A stretch of DNA of 63,107 nucleotides, filler included, from Octopus bimaculoides (Eukaryota), in assembly GCF_001194135.2 (NCBI RefSeq). It is 5 parts of 5 records of this genome, joined end to end, with 100 filler letters (N's around TTAATTAATTAA, not from the genome) between each part and the next. Parts side by side here need not be neighbours in the genome. Positions count along the whole stretch, not along the records: positions 1 to 16,372 come from NC_068987.1; 4 more parts are not named here. One strand, 5' to 3'. Below, piece by piece: positions 6,270 to 6,899 of the stretch; the first letter of the stretch is position 1; each line of letters starts with the position of its first letter. The notes below the pieces were generated by a model that made no database searches, was not told the origin of the DNA, and saw only the letters and a list, made by a program, of their open reading frames with translations. Position numbers and translations under genes: made by a program.

Positions 6270-6899
6270 CTAATCCATCATTTGGGTGCACGCTTCATCC
6301 AAATCTTCGCACAAAGTTTTAAATTTCTTCTGTTCTTCTTCGAGCTCTTTTGTGAGCTTGTCGATATCATTCTCAAGTTTTTGGACGTTTCGTTCGGCTT
6401 CCAATGCCCGGTTTTCGGCAGACTGGAGCTTCTCAGAATCCTCTTCGGCTTGCACTCGTTTCTCTTCCACTTGACTTTCAGATCGGGTAAGATCTAATTC
6501 TAAAAGATTGATTTTCCGGTTTAAATCTTGTGTCTCGCTCTCCGTCTCCGATAATTTCTCTTCTGTATATCTCATCATGTCCTGTGCTTTTTCTAATTGG
6601 GCAGATACTTCATCAAATTCTCTTTGTAAATTACTATACTTCTTGTGCATCCACACCAACTCCTCGTCAACTTTCTTTTTGTCTTCTTCCACCAACTGGT
6701 ATTTAGCTAAACTTTCGTTCAAATCATCGTTCTCTTTCTCCAGAGCTCCATACTTTTTCTGTAAAAACATAAAATCATCTTGAATTTTATCGCGTTCTTC
6801 TTCAACCTGCCTCAGCCTTAATTCCAGTTCCTCGGCTTTTTCCAGAGCATTTACTCGCTCTGCGATTAAGGCATTCATTTTCTTCTTGCACGCTTCCAT
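6270..6899 (-). CDS. Intronless tropomyosin-like coiled-coil protein, 209 aa
   Basis: Uninterrupted ORF in good start context (caaataaacATGG). N-terminus MEACKKKMNAL matches the tropomyosin MDAIKKKM motif; internal LNRKINLLELDL matches LNRRIQLLEEDL; C-terminus AENRALEAERNVQKLENDIDKL...KFKTLCEDLD matches AENRAAEAERTVSKLQKEVDRL...RYKAISDELD. No Pro; heptad pattern throughout. Confidence 0.9.
   Translation of the reverse strand: MEACKKKMNALIAERVNALEKAEELELRLRQVEEERDKIQDDFMFLQKKYGALEKENDDLNESLAKYQLVEEDKKKVDEELVWMHKKYSNLQREFDEVSAQLEKAQDMMRYTEEKLSETESETQDLNRKINLLELDLTRSESQVEEKRVQAEEDSEKLQSAENRALEAERNVQKLENDIDKLTKELEEEQKKFKTLCEDLDEACTQMMD

Follow-up and report, generated by a model that had tools for sequence, protein, structure and literature searches.

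We analyse a window of 63,107 nucleotides (the whole stretch of Octopus bimaculoides DNA under study, five parts of the genome joined end to end with filler between them) and concentrate on an open reading frame (ORF) of 209 codons on its minus strand, at positions 6270..6899. We find that this ORF is a conserved, expressed gene of the tropomyosin family, whose protein keeps both of the ends through which tropomyosins polymerise, carries two copies of a module of 38 amino acids (aa) and lacks 112 aa from the centre of the canonical 284-aa molecule. We place the probability of this description at roughly 95%. The functional model that we build upon it, an actin-binding tropomyosin that would span about five actins, is a reading of the sequence, and we put it at about 60%.

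The ORF listing shows an intact frame from ATG to TAG, identical (100%) to a called gene at 13,148,367-13,148,996 of CM046607.1 (GCA_001194135.2). The protein scores 72.1 bits against the Pfam Tropomyosin profile (PF00261; cutoff 38.6, E = 6e-20), in three stretches, and matches the tropomyosins of the PDB with E = 3e-15 in phmmer. An AF2 model, computed from the single sequence as a monomer, is one unbroken helix from residue 2 to residue 208 with a mean pLDDT of 93.5. The parts of the gene to which we refer below are the following.

6270..6899, minus strand: complete intronless coding sequence (CDS) of the short tropomyosin-family protein, with its TAG stop at 6270-6272 (ORF list, Pfam, called gene).
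6807..6899, minus strand: residues 1-31 (MEACKKKMNALI...), comprising the N-terminal overlap and the period-1 segment and collinear with canonical 1-31 (HMMER, PDB tropomyosins).
6711..6824, minus strand: residues 26-63, the 38-codon block missing from the 171-aa paralogues (MAFFT alignments).
6693..6806, minus strand: unit A, residues 32-69, the first and more diverged copy of the module, equivalent to canonical 32-69, with K48-K49-Y50.
6669..6710, minus strand: heptad discontinuity, residues 64-77, a +3 stammer with core L64-Y67-V70-K74-V77 and spacing 3-3-4-3.
6579..6692, minus strand: unit B, residues 70-107, the second copy of the module and the one common to the 171-aa paralogue, with W83 and K86-K87-Y88.
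6477..6578, minus strand: residues 108-141, equivalent to canonical 70-103, with the signature LNRKINLLELDLTRSE (canonical LNRRIQLLEEDLERSE) and R128 = R90.
6429..6476, minus strand: residues 142-157 (SQVEEKRVQAEEDSEK), the linker over the 112-aa deletion, with no clear canonical counterpart (0-2/16 identical).
6273..6428, minus strand: residues 158-209, equivalent to canonical 232-283, the last period and C-terminal overlap, with R170 = R244, K174 = K248, Cys197 and Cys204.

We map the protein onto canonical numbering in blocks of fixed offset. Compared in this way with a 284-aa tropomyosin-like protein of Haliotis, residues 1-69 correspond to canonical 1-69 (28/69 identical) and residues 70-141 to canonical 32-103 (27/72 identical). 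Residues 158-209 correspond to canonical 232-283 with 20-21 of the 52 positions identical; here AE.RA.EAER.V.KL is kept and the last eight residues have diverged. The agreement is closest in residues 118-141, where 15 of 24 are identical to 80-103 of the canonical-type isoform of O. vulgaris. HMMER aligns residues 1-64 of the query with tropomyosin (Tm) 1-64 and residues 70-201 with Tm 32-159. What is kept of the canonical protein is residues 1-103 and about 232-283, with the ends MEACKKKM... and ...LDEACTQMMD, and the net central loss amounts to 112 aa, that is 16 heptads, in register. In a one-gap scan, the 112-aa gap fits best when it follows residue 105-119 in the 171-aa form described below, equivalent to 143-157 of the 209-aa form. 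Since the linker at 142-157 has no canonical counterpart, the edges of the deletion are fixed only to within about 16 residues, and the lost segment runs from canonical 104-120 to canonical 215-231. By the usual numbering, this segment comprises periods 4 and 5 and most of period 6, including the region around residue 190. The initial annotation of this DNA had proposed the same two-block map, the same in-register loss of 16 heptads and intact polymerisation ends, and all three hold: the HMMER alignments and block identities reproduce the map, the one-gap scan and block identities the loss, and the segments equivalent to canonical 1-31 and 232-283 are both retained.

These polymerisation ends rank with the best-conserved segments of the protein in an alignment of octopod sequences. 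Across five such sequences residues 1-25 hardly vary, and the N-terminus MEACKKKM (canonical MDAIKKKM), which keeps the motif M-[DE]-A-x-K-K-K-M, is invariant in all five. The linker SQVEEKRVQAEEDSEK places K147 and D154 on d positions of the core, and its own core, EEKRVQ.E.D, does not vary across the octopod family; judged from the sequence, the coiled coil is probably destabilised at this conserved polar patch within 142-157. One other placement of the deletion was considered. The best local HMMER alignment pairs query 85-207 with Tm 159-281, which corresponds to a deletion of canonical 47-158, and we reject it as a cross-match between periods, because in residues 47-103 of the 171-aa form the offset-0 N-terminal map reaches scores of 56-85 and the C-terminal map scores of 12-37, and because the one-gap break falls after 105-119.

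We now turn to the internal repeat. Residues 32-66 and 70-104 score 75 in BLOSUM62, the top of 928 phase-matched pairs of 35-aa windows (mean 14, SD 13.9, z = 4.4). All pairs in the same heptad phase serve as the background here, since any in-phase segments of a coiled coil look somewhat alike. By comparison, the best internal window pair in the 284-aa tropomyosin-like control scores 47, and in the Argonauta orthologue the same repeat offset again ranks top. Over their full length, units A and B are identical at 13/38 amino acids and 62/114 nucleotides (54% of the DNA); each is identical to the canonical sequence at 14-17/38 positions, and against canonical 32-66 they score 74 (unit A) and 87 (unit B). 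Because the two units are about as close to canonical 32-66 as they are to each other, both are homologous to it and the duplication is old. This bears on the description of the gene in the initial annotation as re-engineered, with one period duplicated: the presence of two copies of a unit of about 38 aa stands, but the recent, gene-specific change that the wording implied does not, the two-unit form being old and present in Argonauta as well.

The module has a direct consequence for the coiled coil. Each copy consists of five heptads plus three residues, so that every added module brings one stammer. A register trace of the 209-aa protein indeed starts in the register a = 1 mod 7 and goes over to a = 4 mod 7 near residue 67, with the core series L60-L64-Y67-V70-K74-V77-L81 around the change; the trace also shows a weak core at residues 144-154, with an ambiguous register at 144-150. 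The register changes at about residue 61 in the 209-aa orthologue of Argonauta and twice, at about residues 68 and 112, in a 247-aa relative; the 171-aa paralogue and the 284-aa canonical control keep a = 1 mod 7 essentially throughout. Both the repeat of 32-66 at 70-104 and a stammer near Y67-L69 had been anticipated, and the stammer is found at Y67-V70. Taken together with the map, this means that the structural reading of the initial annotation is right in all tested details.

The 209-aa gene has close relatives of stepped length. An intact intronless ORF of 171 aa lies 9 kb downstream of it in O. bimaculoides, outside the window (L003:12172-12687); O. vulgaris (P0001) and Argonauta (P0002) carry this ORF too, so that it is intact in three species. 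In MAFFT alignments, the 171-aa protein is the 209-aa protein minus residues 26-63, exactly 38 aa, and its single unit shares 24/38 residues with unit B. The two genes are also tandem in Argonauta hians, 7 kb apart (L002:415-1044 for the 209-aa orthologue, which is 83% identical, and L002:8001-8516 for the 171-aa gene). Because the tandem pair is found in O. bimaculoides and in Argonauta hians, it is older than the split between Octopodidae and Argonautidae, two families of Incirrata that have both kept it. The 200 nt upstream, 5' untranslated region (UTR) and promoter sequence included, can be aligned between the paralogues, and so the gene duplication was a DNA-level event that took the promoter along. 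In O. vulgaris, the 209-aa gene is not found within the 8 kb examined around the 171-aa gene.

A third member of the family, of 247 aa (209 + 38) and with three units, was recovered by profile search from the Logan mRNA contig L004 (SRR9970006). The contig reads as 247 aa across a frameshift at a homopolymer, A9 (L004:540-560), and two Tara Oceans fragments (P0004 and P0044) read in frame through the same site; the frameshift is probably a homopolymer assembly error. The family lengths of 171, 209 and 247 aa follow 171 + n x 38. An exhaustive search with HMMER over 1.84 billion representatives yielded only one close cluster and one 122-aa fragment, with canonical tropomyosins at 23-42% identity, and profile and word searches added only the Tara fragments and L004. 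Across these searches the nearest relatives are animal, mostly molluscan, tropomyosins. A metagenome DNA scan for relatives of the short tropomyosins gave no match, and the representative, profile and word searches recovered no annotated orthologue from squid, cuttlefish or Nautilus, which may reflect absence or the limits of the collections.

How might this family have arisen? In the history that we propose, an ancient retroposition of a tropomyosin mRNA, suggested solely by the lack of introns, would have come first; the number of modules would then have changed by unequal exchange, and a tandem duplication at the DNA level, promoter included, would have given the present pair. The direction of the change in module number can be read from the residues just before unit A. 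Residues 26-31 of the 209-aa protein (ELRLRQ) resemble the canonical EQQLRD, and the same residues of the 171-aa protein (SNKYQQ) resemble the linker between units A and B of the 209-aa protein (LAKYQL, residues 64-69). By parsimony, from this pattern and from the three-unit relative, we favour, without regarding the matter as settled, a multi-unit ancestor from which the 171-aa gene would have lost the unit at 26-63, and the one-unit neighbour may be the derived form. The opposite order, which starts from a one-unit ancestor of 171 aa and derives the 209-aa gene through an internal tandem duplication of 114 bp, is a serious competitor whose odds fall only a little short of even. The 171-aa form is collinear with canonical 1-103, with no gap and an unbroken register, unit B is closest to the unit of that form, and the literature takes yeast Tpm1 to be the duplicated form of its own pair (PMC12440208). 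It is the canonical-like 26-31 in the 209-aa protein and the linker-like 26-31 in the 171-aa protein that make loss of 26-63 the simpler account; the distant 247-aa relative has three units, and the divergence between A and B (13/38, against 14-17/38 for each with the canonical sequence) means that any duplication is very old. The signal that would separate a 171-aa-first history from a loss is also blurred by signs of gene conversion. Identity at third codon positions is 0.667 between the O. bimaculoides paralogues, compared with 0.55 and 0.51 between them and their Argonauta orthologues and 0.47 between the Argonauta paralogues, a pattern that suggests that the tandem copies have undergone gene conversion within the Octopus lineage.

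With the architecture in hand, we ask what the protein might do. The length of a tropomyosin sets the number of actin subunits that it covers. Simple arithmetic gives (209-9)/39.3 = 5.1 for the longer protein of the pair and (171-9)/39.3 = 4.1 for the shorter. The basic clusters follow the same count: the 209-aa form has five (K6/K7, K48/K49, K86/K87, R128/K129, equivalent to R90/R91, and R170/K174, equivalent to R244/K248), the 171-aa form four and the 247-aa form six. R128 and R170 preserve two actin-contact arginines of the canonical protein, R90 and R244. The remaining actin-contact residues of this series are reportedly those given by Li et al. in 2011. For a tropomyosin, a charge periodicity of about 19.7 residues is expected, in 14 alpha/beta bands (McLachlan-Stewart), and the net-charge spectra of the 209-aa and 247-aa proteins have their Fourier peak at 20.0-20.25 residues, that of the 171-aa protein at 20.75; in a band chosen beforehand, p = 0.03 for the 209-aa protein, 0.003 for the 247-aa protein and 0.004 for the canonical control. 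The Met-Glu start is an N-terminus of the NatB type, like the canonical Met-Asp. In the canonical protein R90, R167 and R244 contact actin, and the importance of the tropomyosin ends for head-to-tail overlap has been reviewed (both PMC7109180).

From these features we propose that the 209-aa protein would form a parallel homodimeric coiled coil and polymerise head to tail along F-actin. It would cover five actin subunits and the 171-aa form four, and the 38-aa module would be the step by which length is set, as between yeast Tpm1 and Tpm2. The initial annotation had suggested a five-actin, troponin-independent actin regulator, a plausible reading that agrees with the length arithmetic, the five basic clusters and the charge periodicity of about 20 residues. 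The stammer would block full-length, in-register heterodimers of the 209-aa and 171-aa proteins and so leave separate homodimers, and the near-identical ends could let these homodimers co-polymerise. Regulation by troponin is unlikely, because the central troponin-core region is absent.

Several observations weigh against this picture and should be considered together. Tropomyosin is the classic coiled coil of unbroken heptads; the heptads of the 209-aa protein are not unbroken from end to end, and a stammer is atypical of the family, as is the polar core patch with K147 and D154. The protein shares only about 26-41% of its residues with canonical tropomyosins. Its basic clusters stand 42, 38, 42 and 42 residues apart (mean 41) and not 39.3, and the periodicity signal is weak: over the whole spectrum it is not significant for the short proteins, with p of 0.3-0.4 for the 209-aa protein, and in the chosen band p = 0.21 for the 171-aa protein. 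As to the family and its history, the 247-aa relative comes from a single Logan contig read through the A9 frameshift, and the intronless state is the one observation that speaks for retroposition: no poly(A) remnant or target-site duplications were recovered beside the 209-aa gene, whose 3' flank is an N gap, and such an event would be ancient.

Much of this would suit a coiled coil that derives from tropomyosin and has taken on a new function, one that does not decorate actin and serves as an adaptor or scaffold, such as a motor or cargo adaptor resembling the atypical Tm1-I/C isoform of Drosophila, or as a disulfide-linked structural protein. The low identity favours such a protein, as do the atypical combination of a heptad stammer with the conserved polar patch EEKRVQAEED, a charge periodicity that is only marginally significant in the 209-aa protein, a weak PDB match to a fragment of the atypical Drosophila Tm1 (7bjg, E = 4e-4), and family-specific residues (Cys 4, 197 and 204 and a surface Trp83) that are conserved here and not found in the canonical sequences compared. 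We nevertheless consider it unlikely. Both polymerisation ends are among the best-conserved parts, the R90 and R244 equivalents and KK doublets sit at a period-like spacing, and lengths that step by 38 aa, about one actin period, to totals of 4, 5 and 6 periods are unexpected for a scaffold that does not bind actin.

The cysteines and the tryptophan are also worth recording in their own right. Cys4 (on a core d position; codon at 6888-6890), Cys197 (6309-6311) and Cys204 (6288-6290) are invariant in the five octopod proteins, and Cys4 and Cys197 occur in the 247-aa relative too. Trp83 (6651-6653), at position c on the surface, is found again in that relative's units. None of the canonical tropomyosins compared has any of these four residues at equivalent positions, and they are possible redox or partner-binding features at the overlap.

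The actin-binding model presupposes a functional gene, and both selection and transcription bear on this. Between the 209-aa genes of O. bimaculoides and Argonauta, the proportion of nonsynonymous differences (pN) is 0.078 and that of synonymous differences (pS) is 0.78, which is saturated, so that pN/pS is about 0.1. The segment of unit A (32-69) has pN 0.12 and pS 0.58, and for the 171-aa genes of O. bimaculoides and O. vulgaris the ratio of nonsynonymous to synonymous rates (dN/dS) is 0.16. These comparisons indicate that the 209-aa gene is under strong purifying selection.

For transcription, RNA contigs and raw RNA-seq reads span 6186 to about 7087 without joints, which leaves no introns in the ORF or the 5'UTR. 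The Logan contigs of eight runs cover 6186 to 7064-7095, with zero mismatches or indels in the ORF and zero joints, and the transcript sequence is present in 20 runs from seven studies. Three RNA-seq runs of 2026, each sampled to about 6%, yield 94-440 raw reads, again free of joints, and their depth drops to about zero past 7087. The cDNA contig of run X15 stops at 7082 and then continues as CCCATGTACTCTGCGTTGATAC, which we take to be the reverse complement of the SMART template-switch oligo; on that identification, 7082 marks the true 5' end of the cDNA. An intact ORF of 209 codons with no introns had been claimed at the outset, with dN/dS and expression named as checks on it; the ORF listing and the joint-free RNA contigs and reads confirm the former, and on the latter the ratio is not near 1 and the gene is transcribed, in Logan contigs of eight runs and raw reads of three. 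The transcript adds three features to those listed above.

6900..7082, minus strand: 5'UTR of 183 nt with no upstream ATG (RNA contig ends, template-switch end, read depth, UTR scan).
7079..7084, minus strand: TCAGTT motif containing the transcription start A7082 (context of the start site; its surroundings are conserved upstream of the 171-aa paralogue).
6186..6269, minus strand: start of the 3'UTR, which runs into the assembly gap N 6077-6185 (RNA contigs).

Two further explanations can be dismissed on this evidence. A decaying processed pseudogene or neutral retrocopy of tropomyosin, with its frame open by chance, would account for a gene that is intronless, where canonical animal tropomyosin genes have many exons, and strongly diverged from the canonical sequence, yet it is effectively refuted, and we give it hardly any weight, by an ORF intact in both octopods that have the 209-aa gene while synonymous sites are saturated (pS 0.78, pN 0.078), by a tandem 171-aa paralogue intact in three species and by robust transcription from a defined start site. 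Weaker still is a misassembly of the 38-aa repeat beside the N gap at 6077-6185, only 85 nt downstream of the stop codon, which is refuted by RNA contigs from several studies that match 6186-7095 with no mismatch or indel, by raw reads with one minor synonymous variant (6690), by copies that share only 54% of their DNA and by the same 209-aa architecture in Argonauta.

Some smaller observations concern the transcript itself. The start codon of the 209-aa gene stands in the context AAACATGG, and the TCAGTT at its transcription start is initiator-like, a putative initiator (Inr) read from the consensus. RNA contigs with lengths of 1115 and 1090 reach past 6186 by at least 170-205 nt, and given these contigs, public RNA data could close the gap at 6077-6185. 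This gap, which breaks the 3'UTR of the 209-aa gene, is one of three N runs noted as assembly gaps, the others being 2358-2883 and 3883-3892. Within the 3'UTR, RNA reads are polymorphic at 6238 (G>C, fixed in X29 and the X12 contig and partial in X30) and at 6194 and 6200. The sole variant in reads of the CDS is minor: 6690 C>A in 7/67 reads of X31, a synonymous change of Val70 from GTG to GTT. Metatranscriptomes labelled 'insect metagenome' and 'termite gut metagenome' (X25-X28) contain 13-42% of the 31-mers of the octopus transcript, most likely through carry-over between samples at the sequencing facility.

The neighbouring gene calls for a correction. A database model of it (P0003, 193 aa, 'tropomyosin Por p 1.0101') fuses two upstream exons inside the window, at 1348-1435 and 176-249 (-), to the body of the 171-aa gene. 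Its first exon has essentially no RNA contig cover and its second lies inside a high-copy repeat, and this RefSeq-style model appears to be mis-built, with the intact 171-aa intronless ORF there instead; a corrected annotation of that gene is one practical outcome of this work. Upstream of the 171-aa gene of O. vulgaris lies a reverse-transcriptase-like ORF of 272 aa (L001:598-1416).

The rest of the window is rich in repeats. A very high-copy dispersed repeat occupies 1-230, with related copies near 14521-14766, 10828-11103 and 15693-15944; it reaches a word depth of 10^5-10^6 in RNA and cDNA runs and occurs in thousands of contigs, with similar short ORF fragments recurring, and it is probably an abundant SINE-like element of octopus. 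Apart from the 209-codon frame, a single ORF of at least 90 aa is free of N runs and simple repeats (10828-11103), and it sits inside this dispersed repeat. A (CATA)n microsatellite of about 81 copies lies at 5375-5696, and further GTT, GT, TTG, ATT and TTA runs lie at 1893-1932, 3893-3937, 4635-4690, 8186-8233 and 8533-8582. Scans of the window for tRNA genes and Rfam families found no match.

It is useful to set the octopod proteins beside tropomyosins that are already known. The obvious counterpart is the pair Tpm1 and Tpm2 of Saccharomyces cerevisiae, of 199 and 161 aa, which differ by an internal duplication of 38 aa; biochemical work has established that they cover five and four actins, respectively (PMC12440208, PMC2120352). 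A difference of exactly 38 aa also separates the proteins of the octopod 209/171 pair, but this pair is of independent origin and its genes are tandem, its actin span is inferred, and the likeness is one of analogy and not of shared descent. With the canonical animal muscle tropomyosin (284 aa, seven periods) the octopod protein shares the start M-[DE]-A-x-K-K-K-M, the motifs LNR[RK]I..LE.DL.RSE and AE.RA.EAER.V.KL.., a long helix and a heptad core; it differs in being 75 aa shorter (112 lost, 38 gained), in its one stammer, in its intronless gene, in a C-terminus that ends ...EACTQMMD in place of ...QTFAELAGY and in the family-specific Cys4, Cys197, Cys204 and Trp83, and even inside the mapped blocks identity is only about 38-41%.

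Two other groups of shortened tropomyosins differ from the octopod form in their design. The low-molecular-weight tropomyosins of animals (about 245-248 aa, six periods; in O. vulgaris the 245-aa P0046) are products of a multi-exon gene that switches to an alternative promoter and first exon, and they keep the centre and C-terminal region, whereas the octopod 209-aa gene is separate and intronless, has the long-form N-terminus and lacks the centre. Short cytoskeletal tropomyosins are thought to act on non-muscle actin without troponin. The Hitchcock-DeGregori and Tobacman laboratories are said to have made period-deletion mutants of tropomyosin, in which, as in the octopod protein, whole actin-binding periods are removed and both ends kept. 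Those constructs are artificial and usually delete quasi-repeats; the octopod form is natural and selected, has exactly 16 heptads deleted and carries a module that breaks the register. One such construct, a period-5 deletion, is cited in PMC7109180.

A full-text literature search found no paper on a short octopod tropomyosin. To our knowledge, every animal tropomyosin yet described covers six or seven actins; forms that span four or five have been reported from fungi. A wider proposal, which we advance tentatively and would not ourselves bet on, is that cephalopods possess, next to the canonical one, a separate tropomyosin system, which other pelagic molluscs may share: an intronless family of 171 + n x 38 aa covering 4, 5 or 6 actins, rephased by stammers, whose cysteine-bearing ends would polymerise together but not with the canonical protein and would mark filaments independent of troponin. 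Should the functional model hold, these would be the first animal tropomyosins to extend over four or five actins, convergent with the design of yeast Tpm1 and Tpm2. Binding to 4, 5 and 6 actins, if true, would make the family a natural series for how the 39.3-residue period, the heptad register and the phase of the supercoil set the actin-binding period, and would show how cells build populations of actin filaments outside troponin regulation.

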